Below are positions 9,143-20,588 of a DNA stretch of 20,588 nt, one piece after another. The notes under the pieces were generated by a model. It was given only the letters and a program-made list of their open reading frames with translations, searched no databases and was not told the origin of the DNA. The translations under genes and the position numbers were made by a program. Origin of the DNA: Paramicrosporidium saccamoebae KSL3 (lineage: Eukaryota > Fungi > Cryptomycota); the NCBI GenBank assembly GCA_002794465.1, contig MTSL01000128.1, forward strand, positions 1 through 20,588, written 5' to 3'. How positions within the stretch are numbered: the first letter of the stretch is position 1; every line of letters begins with the position of its first letter.

Positions 9143-10048
9143 CTATTGATATTGAGCAATAAGTTGTTCTATATGCGGGACAAAGACCAAATGGTCAGAC
9201 AGTTGACCGAGATCAAAGGACTGTTCGTATTCAGTGTCAATAGCAACAGCGCGTCTAATACCAGTCAGTTCTGGCCGTGTTGTGGATGGAACGGCAGTAA
9301 ATTGTTGTCCATTCACCAACAATGAAAGCCGACCAGAAGCATGCCTCTGTATTTTGCCATAAAGTCCTTCAGCGGTGGTGGGCCATGCTGAGGTAGCTTC
9401 AGGTTTAGTGTTGCTTTCCAGGGACCGAAAAGCATCGATATCCATGGCATGTTCCTCGCCTGTCAGGAGAGCGCTTGGGAGGGTGTCGGGCTGGACGGTT
9501 GTATTGGATTCGTCTCGCATGACGGGTATACAAGAAGGGAGTTGCACCAAGAATAGCTTTCGTTCGCCATCCAACAGAGCCGATCCATCCAAATATACAT
9601 CATCCATGATAATGTTCCGTCCGCCTTCCGTTTTGACTATGACGTCTTCGGCGGATAAGGAAAGCAGACTGACGGGAAGATGGGCGCTCTCTATCCTCTG
9701 GGCCAGGACTTGTTCCAGATTAGAGTCTTCTTCATAATCTAAGGATGGGTTGCTATCCACCATGGTTGTTGGTTTGCTCTTTAATGTATTGGTGGTGAAA
9801 GAAGAGGTCCGAGACTTGTTGGCAGCGGCAGCAGGACCATGAGCAAAGGGACCTGACACTGCCACTGGCGTGAGGAGACCACTCCTGGGGGGATGAGGTC
9901 TTGCGGCGCCCCTTCCTCGACCTCTCCCTCGCACAGCAACCGGCTTGGGAATCTCGGGTGCCGGTGGGGTGCTACGTCGAGCGCCAGCGGCCACATTTGG
10001 AACAAACTTTGTCTTGGGGACTCCACTTCTGGAAGTATCACCCTCCAT
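9143..10048 (-). CDS. RPC53: RNA polymerase III subunit RPC4 (Rpc53/POLR3D)
   Basis: N-terminal KFVPN, SGPFAHGPA, and the C-terminal RPC4 domain KLFLVQLP ... EGLYGKIQRHASGRLSLLVNG. The first ATG is at 10048; the ORF-track start at 10072 is TTG. Confidence 0.85.
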   Translation of the reverse strand: MEGDTSRSGVPKTKFVPNVAAGARRSTPPAPEIPKPVAVRGRGRGRGAARPHPPRSGLLTPVAVSGPFAHGPAAAANKSRTSSFTTNTLKSKPTTMVDSNPSLDYEEDSNLEQVLAQRIESAHLPVSLLSLSAEDVIVKTEGGRNIIMDDVYLDGSALLDGERKLFLVQLPSCIPVMRDESNTTVQPDTLPSALLTGEEHAMDIDAFRSLESNTKPEATSAWPTTAEGLYGKIQRHASGRLSLLVNGQQFTAVPSTTRPELTGIRRAVAIDTEYEQSFDLGQLSDHLVFVPHIEQLIAQYQ

Positions 10049-10071
10049 CGACTCGACCTGGGTGTCTATCA
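10049..10071. promoter_or_regulatory. 23-bp spacer between divergent RPC53 and RRP41 start codons
   Basis: CAT(10046-10048) cgactcgacctgggtgtctatca ATG(10072). Regulatory role is inferred from position only. Confidence 0.55.
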
Positions 10072-10839
10072 ATGTCTCGTCTGGAATTTGTGTCTCCCGA
10101 GGGACTGCGACTGGACGGACGAAGGGCTAATGAGCTCCGTAGTCTCAGTGCCAAAATGGGCGTATTGCCGCAGGTGGACGGTTCGGCTTTATTTGAGCTC
10201 GGAAATACGCGCGTCCTTGCAACAGTCCATGGCCCCCGTGAGCCTCGACAAAAGGGCCAGGCACAGCATGATTGTGTTGCCCTCACAGCCCGTTTTCATG
10301 CGGCCACCTTTAGTTCTGTGACCGGCGAACGACGACGTATCCTCCGTCAGGACCGACGGCTCACCGAGTGGGGGCACTACATCGAGGAACTCTATTCCTC
10401 GGCCATTATCGGCTCCCTCTTTCCGCGTTCACAGATTGAGATATTTATTGAGGTGCTAAATGCCGACGGGAGTGTGCTGGCGGCAGCGATTAATGCCACA
10501 ACATTGGCACTGGTCAATGCGGGCATTCCGGTGTATGACTATGTGGTGGCCACAAGTGTGGGTCATTTGGCACAGACAGCCCTGTTGGACATTAACAGGA
10601 TGGAGGAGGGCGGGGGACGGGGAAATCCCTCCCTGACAGTGGCTGCATATGGAAGGAACCCCAACTTGACACTACTTGTTACCGGCGACACGAGAGTCGG
10701 TGCTGACAAATTAGAGAGCATGTCAGAGGTGGCCCGCAGTGGAATGAAGAAACTCTTTGACATTTTGGATGAGACAGTAGTACGACCCAATATGGAAACA
10801 ATGCTTGAATCTCGGAAATCCAATTTTACTGAACAATAA
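10072..10839 (+). CDS. RRP41: Exosome core subunit Rrp41/Ski6 (EXOSC4), RNase PH family
   Basis: Canonical N-terminus MSRLEFVSPEGLRLDGRRANELR, plus DGSALFELGNTRVLATVHGPRE, FPRSQIEIFIEVLNADG and AAAINATTLALVNAGIP. Confidence 0.95.
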   Translation: MSRLEFVSPEGLRLDGRRANELRSLSAKMGVLPQVDGSALFELGNTRVLATVHGPREPRQKGQAQHDCVALTARFHAATFSSVTGERRRILRQDRRLTEWGHYIEELYSSAIIGSLFPRSQIEIFIEVLNADGSVLAAAINATTLALVNAGIPVYDYVVATSVGHLAQTALLDINRMEEGGGRGNPSLTVAAYGRNPNLTLLVTGDTRVGADKLESMSEVARSGMKKLFDILDETVVRPNMETMLESRKSNFTEQ

Positions 10840-11271
10840 ACCACCATAGAGACTTGCTGAGTGTGCATAAAAGACCCAGAAATCCCTAGTCTGTCAATAT
10901 GCGCTTTCACAGTACGTATATACTATCCGACAAAATCGCAGCTTTCATGACTGTTTATTGGAAAAGTCATGACCAATCAAAATAACCGCGACTCTATGTT
11001 TCGTGCTATCCGAGACATTGGTGAGACGGGCGTGCGGAAAAGTACAGTCGATAATAGAGCCATGTGACGATCTAGTGGGCCCTTGGGTCCTTCCGCAGCG
11101 GGTCTGCGAGCTGCTGATCCTCATTCTGGTACTTTGTTTGGAATGACGCGTGACCATAGCATACCGGCGAGGAGCCAGTATGGACCCGTCTTCCGCTCCT
11201 AACCAACCTCTTCCTACTCCTTGAACGTTGGCAACGTACAATTGCCACGTCTCCTAACAATAGGGGGACTG

Positions 11272-11642
11272 ATGGATGCATCGAACAGGTTGGCCGCAGT
11301 GGAGGAGCAGAATAGGGAGCTTGTTCGAATGCTGCTCGACATGCGCAATGTTCTGACCAAAATTACTGTGCAGGTACAGGGAAACCCGGTGGTTGAGGGT
11401 GTAGAATGAGGAATTGCAAAACGACGTGTTCGAGTTGCATAAAAGAGTTTTGGACTTGCAAGAGGATTCTTTAATGGTACTCCATGGTCATCTCGTCTCG
11501 ACGGTAGGACTCTGTGGGACGACTGCAAGGTTCATCGACTGACTCGGTCCTCACATCTGAAATTGATGGAGAAATGGGCAAGCAGCGTGCCGAGGGAACT
11601 GATTCGGCGCCTTCCACCCTTGGTCGCCTGTTCCACTTCTAA
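11272..11642 (+). CDS. Spliced small coiled-coil protein, join(11272..11373,11405..11476,11508..11642), 102 aa; may extend upstream
   Basis: Two 31-nt GTAC...TAG introns fuse MDASNRLAAVEEQNRELVRMLLDMRNVLTKITVQ, NEELQNDVFELHKRVLDLQEDSLM and DSVGRLQGSSTDSVLTSEIDGEMGKQRAEGTDSAPSTLGRLFHF* into a continuous heptad pattern plus tail. Upstream introns 11178..11263 (GTATGG...CTAACAATAG) and 11129..11159 also keep the frame. Confidence 0.55.
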
Positions 11643-11880
11643 GACCTAAGACTACAATAAATCCCATCCAATCAACGCATTTCAATCTAAGCAGTGCTAC
11701 TGGCATCCAATAGGATTCTAATCCGTTGGTGGCCATGATTGGTGCATATCGCATAATCTGCACCAACCGGGCGGGACTTTTCGTGCGCCCAAGGCCCAAT
11801 CACGGGGTCGATTGCTTGCAATGTGCGCCAATCGCCCACGCCGTACATAAGGACATTGAACGTCCAAGGCCACACATAGT

Positions 11881-14163
11881 ATGATGTACGACAGTATTAT
11901 TTGGAAACGCACGGCACTCTTGCTGGCTGCCATGCTAGCAGCAGTCACCGCGTCTACATCACCATCACATGTCCCAGTTTTCAGAGCCGATCCTAATACT
12001 TTTGAAATCTCAACAGAGATGGTACCCGGAGCAACTTGTGATAACCCCGGGAATGCCTTCAAGAGTAAGGCAGGGGTTTGTATAGACACGCCACTTTTTA
12101 AAGATATCAAAAAGAACAGCACTGATATTATCCGGCTTATGGATAATACAGCCGACTTAGGATTCTTGTTGGCATATTTGTCCCGCTTTAGTGGGCCCTA
12201 TGTGGAATCAATCCATCATCTTGACATGAATGCAGTCTCGACATTTTTAAAGGGCCTTAGTGAAGACGCGTTACAAAGTCTCCCAGAAAGCGTCAAGAGT
12301 GGTTTCCCCCGGGAAATTGACTATCCTTATGCTAGACTCATCCCACTTATGAACAGAAATCAGACGACAAAGCTGAACAATTCTCTCGTAGCAGACGCAA
12401 TCAAGAATGCCACGACTGATGGCATCTTTCGTCGATTGGTCAACTCTCTTCATAAAGAAGTTGTCGCCGAAAATCTCGGTTTGATTAAGGAGCAGCTATT
12501 AAATAACAGAAGTGGCGTCCGTTTGTGGAAACTCGGTGAAGATGTGATGGCCTTGCTCCTCGCCGAAGATGATTTTTGCTCTGCGATTGATCCAGAGGAC
12601 ATGTTGGTGCTTGGAGAACGCAAGGAACGAGCCAAAAAGGTCTCACCCGAGTGTTTTGCTCTGGTGGACTGGACAGACTGTGAATGCGACAGCCGCATTC
12701 GCTCATTTGACGTCAAGGTATTTTCGAAGATGGAAAACGGATTGAGCAAGAGCTGTTTGAACCTTTTTACCGAGCCGATGGTCAAGGAATATGCCTCGTC
12801 CATGGCAAAGGAGGGCCAATACCACTGCCCAAACCTGGATATTCAATACTTGACCATGGCGGCTGCCAAGGGACTCAGTGATGCATGCTTCGCCAGTCCG
12901 TATATTGAGGGCAGTCAAACCCGCATACGATTTGGCCCAAAATGGCTCGTTGTAGGCGACACGGCGCTTGCAGCTCTTGGAGACGACAATCGTGCTTTTG
13001 AAAAGATCCATAAAGACGACTGGAAGTACATTACTTTGGCCCAAAAGACTGAATACCTCAAGGGCTTGGAGGATGCTTGCGGTGATCTCCCGCAAGAATT
13101 CTTCATGTACAACCGCGGAGTGAAGCTGTCAAACAAGTGCTTTGACGAGCTGGATCCCGAGGTCAAGGGCACTGCGTTCTTGTCGGCCGTGCTGGATGAT
13201 GATGTGCTCGCCTCGGTGTCTTCGATAAGCGACTGGAAGGGATTGGATTCGGACCAAAAGACAGTCGAGGGGCTCAAAATCCTGGAGCTGGCTGAGGAGG
13301 TCAAGAACATTGAAAAGATTATCTCGCTCATGTCCAGCAAGGAAGCTAATTCTGATGTCTGCAGCGAAGTAACAGACCTTAAGGATCATCCAGTGTTGCA
13401 AAAGTATTGCAGCCAAAAATGCATTGACAATCTGCCTGACAAGCTTACCTTTTCCACTCTTGCCGAGCTCAACCCACGAATCTCCCTAATGGTATCCCTT
13501 GACCAGTTCATGGAGGCAGAAAGTTCAGAGTGGAGCAGCATCAAGCCGGACCACTTCCACGCTCTCATGGCGGGCGGCAATCTGTGCAAACGTCTCAATG
13601 AGGATCATTTGAGTCAACTCACCGATGACACTATCGAAGTTATGGATGCGCAGTGTGTGTCAGAACTCGATGTGCTGGACAAATTGCCTAGTAATTTCTA
13701 CAAAGCAGTGAAGCCCCGAGCTCTTAGGAAACTGGATGCTGAGATGGCGGGTAAGCTTACGCTAGACTCGTTGAGTGACGACCAGTTTGCCGAGTTGGGA
13801 GCCGACACGGGAGATAAGCATCCTGCCACTCAATGGACCAAAGACACTATAAGTTCGTTCTCTGACACGCGCATCGCAAAGGTGGACGAGTCAACCTGGT
13901 CCCTGATGCCACCCGCTGCCTACGATGGCATCTCGGCATCCCGCATTGCAGACATTCCTGCCGACAAAATGGGCAAGATGAGTGATGCGCAGGTTAGGGG
14001 AATCCCCAACGAGGCCGTTCAGAAGCTGAGTGAGGCGCAGGCCGCAAAGATTGGAGAATCTTACCAAGGCACTGACAAGAGTCCTGTGGCCTATCTGGCG
14101 GGCGTTATTACCGATGCCAAGGTAAAGGCTGTTCTAGACAGTCGCATGCAGCCACCCGCCTAA
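11881..14163 (+). CDS. Large secreted Cys-containing helical-repeat protein, paralog A (760 aa), unknown family
   Basis: Intronless 760-codon ORF with signal peptide (KRTALLLAAMLAAVTAS), several N-glycosylation sequons and no transmembrane segment. It aligns by eye along its length with 16431..18677. Confidence 0.88.
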   Translation: MMYDSIIWKRTALLLAAMLAAVTASTSPSHVPVFRADPNTFEISTEMVPGATCDNPGNAFKSKAGVCIDTPLFKDIKKNSTDIIRLMDNTADLGFLLAYLSRFSGPYVESIHHLDMNAVSTFLKGLSEDALQSLPESVKSGFPREIDYPYARLIPLMNRNQTTKLNNSLVADAIKNATTDGIFRRLVNSLHKEVVAENLGLIKEQLLNNRSGVRLWKLGEDVMALLLAEDDFCSAIDPEDMLVLGERKERAKKVSPECFALVDWTDCECDSRIRSFDVKVFSKMENGLSKSCLNLFTEPMVKEYASSMAKEGQYHCPNLDIQYLTMAAAKGLSDACFASPYIEGSQTRIRFGPKWLVVGDTALAALGDDNRAFEKIHKDDWKYITLAQKTEYLKGLEDACGDLPQEFFMYNRGVKLSNKCFDELDPEVKGTAFLSAVLDDDVLASVSSISDWKGLDSDQKTVEGLKILELAEEVKNIEKIISLMSSKEANSDVCSEVTDLKDHPVLQKYCSQKCIDNLPDKLTFSTLAELNPRISLMVSLDQFMEAESSEWSSIKPDHFHALMAGGNLCKRLNEDHLSQLTDDTIEVMDAQCVSELDVLDKLPSNFYKAVKPRALRKLDAEMAGKLTLDSLSDDQFAELGADTGDKHPATQWTKDTISSFSDTRIAKVDESTWSLMPPAAYDGISASRIADIPADKMGKMSDAQVRGIPNEAVQKLSEAQAAKIGESYQGTDKSPVAYLAGVITDAKVKAVLDSRMQPPA

Positions 14164-16430: not shown

Positions 16431-18677
16431 ATGAAGGTTCCTACTGCGTCTATTATTGCGCTTGCGGCGTGTTTGCTGAGCACTGTTAGTGCAGTCATCG
16501 ATAGCGAAACCCACTATGTCTTGCAAATCAGCGGGAGTGGCAACTATGAAGTGGTTCCTAAACAACCGAGTGCTGCCGATTGTAAGACACCGGCTGCCAA
16601 CTTGAATGCTAATCCATCGTTTATTTGCCTTGACCAGAAACACTTTCTGAAGGGTGAGCACTTTAAAGACGTCAAGTTGAGCGATGCCGTTCTATCACTG
16701 TTGTTCCAATATGCCTCGGGCAATGATAGTGATGCGAATTCTCAAGTGAACAAAGATCTCTTGGCTAAGGTCGCCGGTAACATTGGAAAGGACGTTGACG
16801 TGACTTATGGCCAAGCGCTAGGCCAGTGGTACCCATATCTGCCGGCCAGTTTCTTCTCAAGCCGCAAAGGAGATGTATCCGCTCTCCTCAAGGCGGCCCA
16901 AAACAAAGGTCAATTGAAGGCTATGCTCAACAAATTGGACGCTTCACTTGTAAAAGAGTCAAAGGAAGAAATCTTTACCCAAATGAAGGCCCGCCAGTTA
17001 GAGATGAAGAGTTTGGATGACAAGATTCAGGTGGCCCTGTTAAATGAAGCCGAGGGATGCGTGGCACTAGAGGCGGAACAGCTCTCTGGCTTTGACTCTA
17101 ACAGTTTTACCAAGCTTACCCATGGCTGTCTCTCGGCCATAAGCGACATTTCAACCTATTCCCACTGGAATGTTGGGATCCGTAGCATTCCTTCGACGGT
17201 CTTCAATAACGACATCGAACTGCACGCCGATGCATACAAGTACATGACTGTGAAACAAATTTCCGCGTTGGGCAAAACCGACCCAGATAAGAATGAAAGC
17301 TGCAAACACGTTCCGCTTGGGCACTACCTCCAGGGAAATGGTGCCGAGATGACCCCCAAATGCTTCGCCGCTGCGCTAAAGGGATATATACCTGGGACTG
17401 ACCCGCTCGGGAAGACTTTCAACTTTCTCCCCGCCAACATCCTCTCAGAGGTCACTGAGAATGATCTTGTGCTTAAGCTTGATGCGGAATGGCCATACAT
17501 CTCTGTTGAGCAGAAGAAGCATCTCTTTGAGGGGAAAAAATGTGCCGATGTTTCCGCAAAGGCGCTTCACTTCCACAACCACTTTGCCATTTCTCAGGAA
17601 TGCTTTGAGGAGCTGCCGAGTGAAAGCAAGCCGCTAGCAGTCATCCATGCCGATTTGCCGGACACGGCCTTGGCAGATGTCGACGCTAGTGAAGTTGCCA
17701 AGTGGGAGGTGGGAGACCACAAGGGCTTAATGGTCCTTGAGGTTGCCTCTGAGCGTCCCAACATTGGTAAGCTATTGGAACATGCAAGCACCAAAGTCAA
17801 TGGCGAACATATATGCGCGCTCGTGGAAGATGCTGATGAGCTCAAGGCTCTCCCAGTCATCCAAGAATATGGGACCAAGGCATGCTTTGAAGCTATGCAG
17901 TACAAGGTGACGTTGAATGATCTCAAAAAGTTCGCCCCGAATGTCGAAAAGGTCATTTCGGTTGAGGCGCTCATCAAGGACCTGGATCCCGAAACGGGCT
18001 ACAAGGACTTGAGCCCCAAGACCCTCGGAAGACTGGCCAAGGTTAGCACCATCTGCTCGGCCATGACCCTTCCGATCTTCAACGGACTCTCTGATGAGAC
18101 GCACCGAAAATTCCCAGCTGAATGTATGAGCCAACTGAATTTCTTGGGCGATATCCCAAAGGACACCATGACCAAGATTAACAAGGAGGCCTTTGCCAAC
18201 CTGACAGCTGACATGGTTGCCAAGATCCCAGCTGATCATCTTACCGAAGAGCAGTTTGGAATGGCTGGTTCCGGAGTCAGTGACTCGAAAAAGCATCCAG
18301 CCAGCCTGTGGACTAATGCGACTATGGCGAAATTCACTTCTAGCAATGTACGATACGTTCATGCGTCAGCGTGGAAGGCTGCCCCTGCTGACGCCTACTC
18401 GGGCTTATCAGAGCACGCTTTCGGCTCCATTGAGCCCAAGGACATGGAAGAGATGACTCATGAGCAGATTAGCCAAGTTTCCGAGGCAGCTCGTCTCAAG
18501 CTCACTGTGGAGCAGGCCAAACATTTGGGTCTCAAGGTCACTGATGGCACCCACCCACTGACTTCGATTGCCTCTCTCAAGGGCCTTTCCGAATCGGTCA
18601 GCAAGGCAGTTCAGACGCGCATGGCAGCCACTCCGGCAGCACCAGCAGACGCTCCTCCCTCAGAGGAAAAAAAGTAG
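16431..18677 (+). CDS. Large secreted Cys-containing helical-repeat protein, paralog B (748 aa), unknown family
   Basis: Signal peptide MKVPTASIIALAACLLSTVSA and no transmembrane segment. Shared blocks with paralog A: CFEELP/CFDELD, KHPASLWT/KHPATQWT, PADAYSGLS/PPAAYDGIS. Confidence 0.88.
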   Translation: MKVPTASIIALAACLLSTVSAVIDSETHYVLQISGSGNYEVVPKQPSAADCKTPAANLNANPSFICLDQKHFLKGEHFKDVKLSDAVLSLLFQYASGNDSDANSQVNKDLLAKVAGNIGKDVDVTYGQALGQWYPYLPASFFSSRKGDVSALLKAAQNKGQLKAMLNKLDASLVKESKEEIFTQMKARQLEMKSLDDKIQVALLNEAEGCVALEAEQLSGFDSNSFTKLTHGCLSAISDISTYSHWNVGIRSIPSTVFNNDIELHADAYKYMTVKQISALGKTDPDKNESCKHVPLGHYLQGNGAEMTPKCFAAALKGYIPGTDPLGKTFNFLPANILSEVTENDLVLKLDAEWPYISVEQKKHLFEGKKCADVSAKALHFHNHFAISQECFEELPSESKPLAVIHADLPDTALADVDASEVAKWEVGDHKGLMVLEVASERPNIGKLLEHASTKVNGEHICALVEDADELKALPVIQEYGTKACFEAMQYKVTLNDLKKFAPNVEKVISVEALIKDLDPETGYKDLSPKTLGRLAKVSTICSAMTLPIFNGLSDETHRKFPAECMSQLNFLGDIPKDTMTKINKEAFANLTADMVAKIPADHLTEEQFGMAGSGVSDSKKHPASLWTNATMAKFTSSNVRYVHASAWKAAPADAYSGLSEHAFGSIEPKDMEEMTHEQISQVSEAARLKLTVEQAKHLGLKVTDGTHPLTSIASLKGLSESVSKAVQTRMAATPAAPADAPPSEEKK

Positions 18678-18902: not shown

Positions 18903-19412
18903 TTAAAGAAGAGACTTGATTAGAGTGTTCATGCAGTTAGGATTCGATTTAAACAATGCAGTGGGTTTAAAGATGAGAGAATCAGTCAGAACGACTGGAA
19001 GGTTTTCGACATTGGCGACTAGAACACAACCCATCTTTTGTAGACAGTGAGCCAATTCTTGTTGATGATTATCCATCAAATCTTCATTTGGGACCAGAAT
19101 GAGCTTGGGGATGCGACGAGCGGCATTGTCAAAGATGGGCCCACGTAGTACATCCAGGACAGTACCGCTGCCGGCATGGCCAATGACAATATCGGCTGTC
19201 TGGATGCGGCTCTCCATGTCCGAGATGTAAGTTTCTGGACGAACCTTGGCCGCTGAATGAGTCATCTCGCTGGGGATAGGGGATTGTCCGTGTTGGAGTA
19301 TTATCTCAACAACACCTACATGCTCAGCTGCAGCTTGAAACTCTTTCGAGTAGATTCGGGTTACGAGCGCATCGAAGCGGGTGGTTCCGACCGTAACTAA
19401 CAGTACTGTCAT
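18903..19412 (-). CDS. ALG13: UDP-N-acetylglucosamine transferase subunit Alg13 (GT28 C-terminal family)
   Basis: MTVLLVTVGTTRFDAL, LQHGQS, ADIVIGHAGSGTVLD and KLILVPNEDLMDNHQQELA. ATG at 19412. Confidence 0.93.
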   Translation of the reverse strand: MTVLLVTVGTTRFDALVTRIYSKEFQAAAEHVGVVEIILQHGQSPIPSEMTHSAAKVRPETYISDMESRIQTADIVIGHAGSGTVLDVLRGPIFDNAARRIPKLILVPNEDLMDNHQQELAHCLQKMGCVLVANVENLPVVLTDSLIFKPTALFKSNPNCMNTLIKSLL

Positions 19413-19437
19413 GTCACTGCAAGGGTCAGTTGTCTGA
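19413..19437. promoter_or_regulatory. 25-bp spacer between divergent ALG13 and JJJ1 start codons
   Basis: CAT(19410-19412) gtcactgcaagggtcagttgtctga ATG(19438). Regulatory role is inferred from position only. Confidence 0.55.
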
Positions 19438-20588
19438 ATGGGAAACACTAGCAGTAGTGGGGGGAATACAACAAAAGCCGTGGCTACAAAGCAGAAATGT
19501 TATTATGAGCTGCTGGGTGTTTTGCAGGATGCGACTGGTGACGAGCTCAAGAAGGCATATCGACAAAAGGCGCTTCTCATGCATCCAGACAAGAATCCAC
19601 ACCGACTGGAGGAGGCGCACCACGAGTTTGCCGCAGTGCAAGCCGCCTATGAAGTGCTGAGCGACCCACAAGAGCGTGCATTCTACGACCGACATCGCTC
19701 ATCCATCCTGTCGCAGCACCGTCGAAGGGAGGATGACGATGCACCCGACCTGGACGACCTTGTCAAATACTTTAATACAGACGTATATGAGGGCTTTGGA
19801 GACGGTCCCAAGGGCTTCTTTACTGTCTATCGCCAACTGTTTGAGTTTCTGGAAGAGTTTGAAGCGGAGGAAGAGCTGGACCGACATGGCCACGACTACC
19901 AGCGTGGACGTCAAACTGGCCCTAAAGCAACATATACTTCGTTTGGGAGCAAAAACGCTCCCTACGAGCCAATGGTTCGACAGTTTTATGACAAATGGCT
20001 CCATTTCATCTCCAACCGCACCTTTGACGAGGGCGACCGCTATCAGCCCACTTATGGCGACAATCGTCGGATGCGACGTGCCATGCACAAGGAAAACAGT
20101 AAAGAACGCGACCGACAACGACGCGAATTTAGCGACACAGTGCGTGAACTCGCTGCCTTTGTACGGAAACGCGACCCGCGCTACGTTGCTTTTCAACAAA
20201 ACATTAAAGAGAAAAGGGAACGGGAGGAGAAGGAGCGAAAGGAACGTGACCGAGTGCGTCGTCAAGAGGAAGCAGCCTCGTTTGTGGAGCAGGACTGGAA
20301 TGCCGTCGGCTTGGAGCAGCTTGTGCGAGCTCTCGATGAAAGCGACGATGACAGTGAAGAGACTGATGTTGAGATTGAGGAAGAATTTTACTGTGCTCCG
20401 TGTCGAAAACTGTTTCGAAATCATGGACAATGGAAAAGCCATGAAAAGAGCAAGAAGCATAAGCAAACTCTCTATTCTCTAGGATTTGATATTGACAAAG
20501 AGACGGAGCGGGAGGTAGAGGAGGGAATGGATGAGGCGGTATCAAGGGAGACTGAGCAAGAGGTTGATTCAAATGCGACGATATCAAG
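19438..20588 (+). CDS. JJJ1: J-domain/C2H2 zinc-finger 60S biogenesis co-chaperone Jjj1/DNAJC21 (3' end beyond window; absent from ORF track)
   Basis: My translation gives MGNTSSSGGNTTKAVATKQKCYYELLGV...KKAYRQKALLMHPDKNP...AYEVLSDPQERAFYDRHR, then FYDKW, RRMRRAMHKEN, VRELAAFVRKRDPR and the zinc finger FYCAPCRKLFRNHGQWKSHEKSKKH. The frame is open to the window end. Confidence 0.93.
   Translation, partial: MGNTSSSGGNTTKAVATKQKCYYELLGVLQDATGDELKKAYRQKALLMHPDKNPHRLEEAHHEFAAVQAAYEVLSDPQERAFYDRHRSSILSQHRRREDDDAPDLDDLVKYFNTDVYEGFGDGPKGFFTVYRQLFEFLEEFEAEEELDRHGHDYQRGRQTGPKATYTSFGSKNAPYEPMVRQFYDKWLHFISNRTFDEGDRYQPTYGDNRRMRRAMHKENSKERDRQRREFSDTVRELAAFVRKRDPRYVAFQQNIKEKREREEKERKERDRVRRQEEAASFVEQDWNAVGLEQLVRALDESDDDSEETDVEIEEEFYCAPCRKLFRNHGQWKSHEKSKKHKQTLYSLGFDIDKETEREVEEGMDEAVSRETEQEVDSNATIS

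Follow-up and report, generated by a model that had tools for sequence, protein, structure and literature searches.

How can two genes both be transcribed and translated when their start codons lie head to head with only 23 base pairs (bp) between them? The question is raised by a 20,588-nucleotide (nt) stretch of DNA from the amoeba parasite Paramicrosporidium saccamoebae KSL3, contig MTSL01000128.1 of assembly GCA_002794465.1 (here called the window; its coordinates equal contig positions 1-20588), in which the gene for RPC4 (RPC53/POLR3D), a subunit of RNA polymerase III, runs along the minus strand and the gene for RRP41 (EXOSC4/Ski6), an RNase PH-like core subunit of the exosome, along the plus strand, away from a common junction. 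On the plus strand this junction reads ...CCCTC CAT CGACTCGACCTGGGTGTCTATCA ATG TCTCGT..., where CAT is the RPC4 start codon seen from the opposite strand, and the 23-bp spacer contains ATG on neither strand. An earlier note on this DNA, made from the sequence alone, had named both genes, placed their start codons, and measured the distance between them, and sequence positions and Pfam matches bear this out. With opposite strands, facing 5′ ends, and 23 bp between start codons, where anything below 1 kb would define a bidirectional pair, RPC4/RRP41 is a genuine, extremely compacted bidirectional gene pair.

The contig belongs to the P. saccamoebae deposit MTSL00000000 (Quandt et al. 2017, eLife 6:e29594), a nuclear genome of 7.3 Mb (7.28 Mb) with 3750 genes, 76% gene space, and 47% GC that was binned out of a metagenomic assembly at a reported coverage of about 50-59x. 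The same study describes a compact, microsporidia-related genome together with a canonical mitochondrial genome and a complete mitochondrion, and it includes stranded poly-A RNA-seq of spores (2 x 125 bp) (Quandt et al. 2017). The phrase applied to the locus in the earlier note, microsporidia-like compaction in an organism with full mitochondria, is accordingly true but not new, as it repeats the published description of the organism. The text of Quandt et al. (2017) makes no mention of intergenic distances or introns, and a literature search for promoter motifs in Paramicrosporidium found no report.

Start codons of RRP41 and RPC4

RRP41 aligns with homologs from its very first residue: its residues 1-239 match 1-234 of human EXOSC4 (E = 8e-51), its residues 1-237 match 1-233 of yeast Ski6 (5e-41), and in whole-protein alignment residue 1 pairs with residue 1 of both. 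The protein comprises RNase_PH domain 1 and the C-terminal domain 2 and is collinear over its full length with RRP41 of solved exosomes; the Pfam RNase_PH match starts at residue 21, and the RNase_PH_C match (0.0033) lies below the curated cut-off. The gene model on record (P0001) has 227 residues and begins MGVLPQ at Met29, position 10156, a methionine that pairs with the internal Met29 of human EXOSC4. This recorded start widens the annotated spacer to 107 bp, compared with the real 23 bp, and so hides the tight RPC4/RRP41 spacing. In the 28 codons left out of the model, comparison with the closest relative (L002) shows 9 to be identical, 16 to differ synonymously, and 3 to differ non-synonymously; the preponderance of synonymous over non-synonymous change indicates that these codons are translated. 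There is no ATG in any frame within the 179 nt 5′ of the RRP41 ATG. Homology from residue 1 and the codon comparison agree with the earlier claim that this start is well constrained, and judging from them the recorded model is very probably 28 codons too short and should specify 255 residues, not 227.

The RPC4 product is identical to the recorded 301-residue gene model (P0118). Its C-terminal RNA_pol_Rpc4 domain matches PF05132 at 37.3 bits (cut-off, 26.5) and is accompanied by the N-terminal KFxPN, RGRG, and GPFxxGP motifs expected of RPC4; a sequence search of PDB with the protein gave no match. In an alignment of seven clade orthologs, F15, P17, and N18 of the KFxPN motif are invariant, and they fall 14 codons past the ATG. 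The P. saccamoebae protein is the shortest of the seven, with only 11 residues ahead of K-T-K-F-V-P-N. The next methionine, already described in the earlier note as lying far downstream, is codon 96, and the RGRGRG tract and SGPFxxGP precede it just as KFxPN does. Upstream of the RPC4 ATG the reading frame reaches a stop after 27 codons with no further ATG in it, and the RPC4 start is constrained as had been proposed.

Conservation of the pair in related genomes

Orthologous loci of relatives were taken from Logan, JGI, and NCBI assemblies, with RRP41 50-65% identical to that of P. saccamoebae and starts placed by homology and exon structure. Each related locus fetched (L001, L002, L003, L005, L007, L008/L009, and L010) has RPC4 and RRP41 in head-to-head orientation, and together with the window these make eight distinct loci (Table 1). 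The alignment of orthologous loci that the earlier note had suggested thus finds the pair conserved and the window at the extreme of a continuum of spacers from 23 to 246 bp. Because the two genes are head to head in all loci examined, the pair is, on this comparison, evidently ancient and always tight, with a tight head-to-head arrangement already present in the ancestor of the clade. Two profile searches of JGI metagenomes added nothing to this set: the one with RPC4 found no relatives with further orthologous loci, and the one with RRP41 returned mostly distant matches (29-55% identity), none of which added an orthologous spacer, and these were left unused.

The relatives carry an RRP41 intron after codon 11 or codon 58, which is absent from the window, and their RPC4 N-termini are longer than that of P. 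saccamoebae. In the more distant relatives (L005, L007, L008, and L010), RPC4 opens with a first exon of the form M...PRLxS...TTLGG, followed by an intron and then TKFAPxx, an N-terminal layout that we take to resemble that of human POLR3D. The RPC4 gene of the window has neither this short first exon nor the intron; its lineage has lost both.

Three further features of these loci concern their surroundings. In L003 (6470-6557), the spacer contains CCCA repeats along with a microsatellite of the (TA)n type (CCACCCACCCACCCAC), close to the RRP41 ATG on its 5′ side. The gene order TMEM120, mitochondrial-type RPL2, unknown open reading frames (ORFs), RPC4, RRP41 is common to the window, L002, and L003. 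In L002 PreP lies on the other side of this gene block, indicating a local rearrangement; the best named PreP homologs are from early-diverging fungi (37-39% identity), which fits Holomycota.

Table 1. Coordinates of the two tight gene pairs in the window and of the RPC4/RRP41 spacer (measured from ATG to ATG) in the window and related loci. CDS, coding sequence; aa, amino acids.
Feature	Position	Strand	Length	Remarks
RPC4 (RPC53/POLR3D) CDS	9143..10048	-	301 aa	No intron; Pfam RNA_pol_Rpc4, 3.9e-9
CCCT	10041..10044	+		-31 from RRP41 ATG; inside RPC4 codons 2-3
RPC4 start codon	10046-10048	-		CAT on the plus strand; ATG of the minus-strand ORF 9143..10048
RPC4/RRP41 spacer, window	10049..10071		23 bp	CGACTCGACCTGGGTGTCTATCA
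CCTGGG	10057..10062			Spacer center; GGG at -12 from RRP41 ATG, CCC at -14 from RPC4 ATG
RRP41 start codon	10072-10074	+		ATG; opens ORF 10072..10839
RRP41 (EXOSC4/Ski6) CDS	10072..10839	+	255 aa	No intron; Pfam RNase_PH, 1e-32
First 28 RRP41 codons	10072..10155	+	28 codons	MSRLEFVSPEGLRLDGRRANELRSLSAK; left out of the gene model on record
ALG13-like CDS	18903..19412	-	169 aa	Pfam Glyco_tran_28_C, 8.5e-19; ATG at 19412
ALG13/JJJ1 spacer	19413..19437		25 bp	GTCACTGCAAGGGTCAGTTGTCTGA; central GGG, equal to CCC at -13 from ALG13 ATG and GGG at -15 from JJJ1 ATG
JJJ1/DNAJC21-like CDS	19438..20588	+		DnaJ, ZUO1-like ZHD, and zf-C2H2_jaz domains; continues past the window end
RPC4/RRP41 spacer, L005	1179-1216		38 bp	
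RPC4/RRP41 spacer, L007	3860-3920		61 bp	
RPC4/RRP41 spacer, L008	3934-4000		67 bp	Identical in L009
RPC4/RRP41 spacer, L010	2410-2492		83 bp	
RPC4/RRP41 spacer, L002			136 bp	
RPC4/RRP41 spacer, L003			168 bp	81 bp if the upstream Met is used
RPC4/RRP41 spacer, L001			246 bp	

A second tight pair and gene spacing along the contig

The window holds a second head-to-head pair, ALG13-like and JJJ1/DNAJC21-like, whose start codons are 25 bp apart and well constrained. JJJ1 has an in-frame TGA immediately 5′ of its ATG, and its J domain begins at codon 20. The ALG13-like protein begins MTVLLVTVGTTRFD, and its residue 4 pairs with residue 8 of yeast Alg13 within a weakly aligned N-terminal stretch. 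The CATG at the ALG13 start places a plus-strand upstream ATG at -27 from the JJJ1 ATG; from there an ORF of 8 codons runs to the TGA just ahead of the main ATG (TGAATG).

Gene models and ORFs over contig positions 1-29412 (29.4 kb) define 17 spacers: four divergent (207, 23, 285, and 25 bp), five convergent (356, 247, 395, 225, and 120 bp), and eight tandem (131, 535, 229, 1041, 285, 478, 323, and 647 bp). From the published 7.28 Mb, 3750 genes, and 76% gene space, we calculate a mean intergenic length of ~466 bp, and an exponential model with this mean predicts that ~5% of spacers measure 25 bp or less, compared with two of the four divergent spacers here, a tiny sample. The 23- and 25-bp spacers are shorter than every convergent or tandem spacer (120-1041 bp). 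Tail-to-tail spacers are usually shorter than head-to-head ones, and the order in this stretch is reversed. That the two smallest spacers are both head to head, and below any tail-to-tail spacer, suggests that 5′ ends may need less private DNA than 3′ ends in the P. saccamoebae genome.

The longest of these spacers separates RRP41 from the next gene (10840-11880) and is unusually long for this genome, with no gene model; its ORFs (62-134 residues) lack a Pfam match, and Rfam finds nothing there.

C-rich elements near the start codons

A scan of the junction against Rfam gave no match at the gathering threshold, and a scan for sigma-70 promoters and terminators gave nothing at the spacer, such bacterial signals being irrelevant for a eukaryote. 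In each of the two tiny spacers a single CCC/GGG triplet stands at the center, 12-15 nt from both ATGs, and the CCTGGG of the RPC4/RRP41 spacer is a candidate for a microsporidian-type CCC/GGG initiation element. Upstream of 17 P. saccamoebae genes, CCC occurs at -20 to -1 in 7 (expected, ~3.4) and CCC or GGG in 11 (expected, ~6).

A different C-rich element emerged from comparison among loci. In an unbiased positional scan for 4-mers in the 60 nt 5′ of RRP41, the top hit across the eight loci was CCCT at -30 to -21 (5 of 8), and once the window's copy at -31 is included, six of the eight have CCCT 22-31 nt 5′ of the RRP41 ATG, whatever the length of the spacer. A score this high arose in 42 of 2000 shuffles and in 100 of 2000 circular shifts (p ~0.02-0.05), which is modest support for the element. 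The window CCCT, now within the RPC4 coding sequence, corresponds in position to the copies that five relatives have 22-30 nt before the RRP41 ATG. The 5-mer most widely shared among the eight spacers is CCCTG or CCTGG (max-statistic shuffle p ~0.03). Enrichment of GACCC, ACCCT, and ACCCTT upstream of P. saccamoebae start codons, picked out post hoc, was not upheld by the unbiased test (p ~0.09) and is kept as a lead only.

How both genes could be expressed

An RNA polymerase II (Pol II) initiation complex covers several tens of base pairs, and the earlier note reasoned soundly that two conventional promoters and two 5′ untranslated regions (UTRs) exceed 23 bp. Given the span of the complex, the upstream DNA of each promoter must consist of the first codons of the neighboring gene, wherever the start sites lie. 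Near-leaderless mRNAs and a promoter inside the neighbor's coding sequence had been put forward as alternatives; they are the right pair of possibilities, but they do not exclude one another, because the upstream promoter overlaps the neighbor either way.

We lean toward a reading in which both leaders are short (27 nt or less) and transcription starts in the spacer or at its edges, within a minimal shared initiation zone. Under this scenario, DNA loss in P. saccamoebae would have removed the RRP41 intron and shrunk the spacer, by inference from its relatives, to 23 bp, while the RPC4 N-terminus would have been trimmed to the minimum that preserves the TxRxG-x-KTKFxPN motif. The RPC4 and RRP41 mRNAs would start in the spacer or at its edges with leaders of at most 27 nt, possibly about 10 nt, and each initiation complex would hold, as its upstream DNA, the opening 30-40 bp of the neighboring coding sequence. 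Both complexes would then occupy the same ~70 bp in opposite orientations and presumably fire alternately, not simultaneously. By analogy with the triple-C motif of microsporidia, the zone of initiation may be marked by a C-rich element, for which CCCT at -31 and the central CCTGGG are candidates. One relative bears on leader length: in L005, with its 38-bp spacer, upstream ATGs at -34 and -26 from the RRP41 ATG limit a clean RRP41 leader there to less than 26 nt. The upstream ATG of JJJ1 at -27, the CCCT that keeps its distance from RRP41 over all spacer lengths, the central triplets of both tiny spacers, and the precedent of E. cuniculi in the sister lineage also speak for short leaders.

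Several observations weigh against short leaders started from a marked initiation zone. Look-ups of transcript contigs for the locus by exact product (the 255-residue RRP41 and the longest TTG-start ORFs of both genes) returned no match. The evidence from motifs is weak, and some of it was gathered post hoc: the best unbiased 6-mer upstream of the 17 P. saccamoebae ATGs, ACCCTT, reaches a max-statistic p of ~0.09, and the positional scan of the loci found no conserved element 5′ of RPC4. Long overlapping leaders would go unpenalized, as the sequence upstream is free of ATG for 179 nt in RRP41 and for 182 nt in RPC4. Leaders shorter than about 12 nt make scanning leaky under the standard eukaryotic mechanism, and an out-of-frame ATG at 10130 would capture ribosomes that leak past the start on the RRP41 mRNA. 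Finally, long overlapping transcripts are common in microsporidian spores (PMC2803860).

These last points feed the strongest rival, in which the divergent transcripts overlap: each start site would lie within the neighboring coding sequence at a depth of tens to ~180 nt, the leaders would be of ordinary length and mutually antisense, and the two complexes would sit apart. We regard this as unlikely, though it has precedent in the overlapping transcription of Antonospora locustae and of more than 80% of tested Encephalitozoon cuniculi loci, with control elements shifted into adjacent genes (PMC2803860), and it agrees with the ATG-free tracts, to which the 146 nt without ATG 5′ of ALG13 can be added. 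When the neighbor's codons are resampled synonymously, however, tracts this clean are the usual outcome (P = 0.82-0.89), so that they are explained by the neighbors' protein sequences and reveal no selection for clean long leaders. Depletion of upstream ATGs was for this reason rejected as a test of long overlapping leaders in either direction. Long leaders are harder to reconcile with the upstream ATGs of JJJ1 (-27) and of L005 RRP41 (-26 and -34) and with the conserved CCCT, whose short distance to the RRP41 ATG is fixed, and head-on polymerases would be expected to interfere with each other across the overlap.

A distant promoter, with one or both mRNAs starting far off and reaching the gene through a 5′ UTR intron or as part of a read-through or polycistronic RNA, is very improbable. 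Microsporidia do produce transcription overruns and multigene transcripts (PMC2803860), and introns do occur among P. saccamoebae gene models, those of TMEM120 and JJJ1 being examples. Against this, the plus-strand spacer offers no AG dinucleotide usable as a 3′ splice site before the RRP41 ATG, read-through RNA would have to cross ~900 nt of antisense RPC4 with upstream ATGs at -179, -233, and -288, and the first RRP41 intron of the relatives lies within the coding sequence, not in the leader.

We give still less credence to a wrong start codon, with RRP41 beginning at Met29 (a 107-bp spacer) or RPC4 at Met96. The recorded RRP41 model is in its favor, but homology to both the human and the yeast protein extends from residue 1 through the 28 residues ahead of Met29, whose codons vary mainly at synonymous sites, Met29 is internal and conserved in human EXOSC4, the RNase_PH match starts upstream of it at residue 21, and all three conserved N-terminal motifs of RPC4 (KFxPN, RGRGRG, and SGPFxxGP) precede Met96. 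Least credible is loss or collapse of spacer DNA during assembly, a danger that the earlier note had named and that a genome binned from a metagenomic assembly does invite: no direct repeat flanks the junction and the relatives' independent assemblies reach down to 38 bp, which make an artifact unlikely, and both ORFs are intact up to their start codons, coverage is ~50-59x, and an independent second pair has a spacer of 25 bp.

Comparison with known compact genomes and promoters

The closest published parallel is in E. cuniculi, where 5′ UTRs are shorter than 7 nt, a CCC-like or GGG-like motif stands just upstream of the ATG, and the S16 (ECU03_310) and L13 (ECU03_320) genes are head to head across a 35-bp spacer (PMC2803860). 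The CCC/GGG motif is found 5′ of all E. cuniculi transcripts (PMC5499648), and the early-branching Amphiamblys also has the triple-C motif (PMC5381614). RPC4/RRP41 shares with S16/L13 divergent housekeeping coding sequences a few tens of bp apart, in a compacted genome of the same broad lineage, with presumably shared signals. The P. saccamoebae spacers of 23 and 25 bp are shorter than 35 bp, however, and P. saccamoebae differs from E. cuniculi in retaining a full mitochondrion and introns, in having no AAATTT-like signal in the spacer, and in that its arrangement is read here from DNA alone. Assignment to the microsporidian class of CCC-motif promoters with ultra-short leaders can at most be tentative: each tiny spacer has its CCC/GGG triplet at similar short distances from both ATGs, and the window and five relatives have CCCT at a constant distance 5′ of RRP41, whereas the conserved CCCT is 22-31 nt from the ATG and not immediately upstream of it, and enrichment over the 17 starts is not significant (p ~0.09). 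As far as can be read from gene positions and motifs, the RPC4/RRP41 locus appears to match microsporidian architecture, and its spacing is an expected, if extreme, instance of the genome squeezing known from microsporidia and their relatives.

Other systems illuminate single aspects of the arrangement. Overlapping transcription has reportedly been described in Antonospora locustae, E. cuniculi, and nucleomorphs (Williams et al. 2005 and Corradi et al. 2008, as summarized in PMC2803860), and these genomes resemble P. saccamoebae in having intergenic DNA too short for control elements, which hence lie within adjacent genes; that literature deals mostly with 3′ read-through and multigene transcripts, whereas RPC4/RRP41 poses the problem of two back-to-back 5′ ends. 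Giardia lamblia has short promoters, leaders of 1-14 nt, and inherently bidirectional transcription, and the mammalian TISU element directs translation from very short leaders. Both demonstrate that eukaryotes can make and translate mRNAs whose leaders measure ~12 nt or less, although the lineages are unrelated, the elements differ, and the likeness is one of analogy only. Classical bidirectional promoters of yeast and mammals serve head-to-head pairs less than 1 kb apart from a shared nucleosome-free region. RPC4/RRP41 resembles them as a divergent housekeeping pair whose arrangement is conserved across relatives, but their start sites are typically ~100-200 bp apart and accommodate two separate complexes, whereas start codons 23 bp apart leave no room for complexes side by side.

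Implications

A broader and more tentative proposal is that Paramicrosporidium and its uncultured relatives already use microsporidian-style expression, with a tiny C-rich initiator, near-leaderless mRNAs, and a promoter in the neighbor's first codons; we consider this possible but doubtful. If it is true, microsporidian-style promoter architecture predates mitochondrial loss and extreme gene loss, a working divergent spacer in the lineage could in practice be no shorter than ~23-25 bp, and the shortness of head-to-head relative to tail-to-tail spacers would be explained. With spacers of 23 and 25 bp in an organism that is related to microsporidia but retains mitochondria, the two pairs are clean test loci for asking when ultra-short leaders and coding-embedded promoters arose. 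Should start sites map inside the spacers, two opposed complexes would have to share ~70 bp, most of it coding, and the locus would amount to a natural minimal bidirectional promoter.

What is new here is the 23- and 25-bp pairs, both below the published 35 bp, the correction of the RRP41 model, the deep conservation of RPC4/RRP41, and a possible conserved CCCT element that now lies inside coding sequence. The choice of start codon hides the tightest spacers in the genome, the same problem that was faced by the re-annotation of E. cuniculi. Current understanding is not overturned; a known pattern is extended one branch deeper, and specialists in microsporidian genomics will see in the locus a neat example, not a surprise.

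Neighboring genes

Beyond RRP41, two plus-strand genes (11881-14163 and 16431-18677) encode proteins of ~750 residues with hydrophobic, signal-peptide-like N-termini and no Pfam domain. The two are diverged paralogs, with 23% identity over 732 residues (E = 2e-47).

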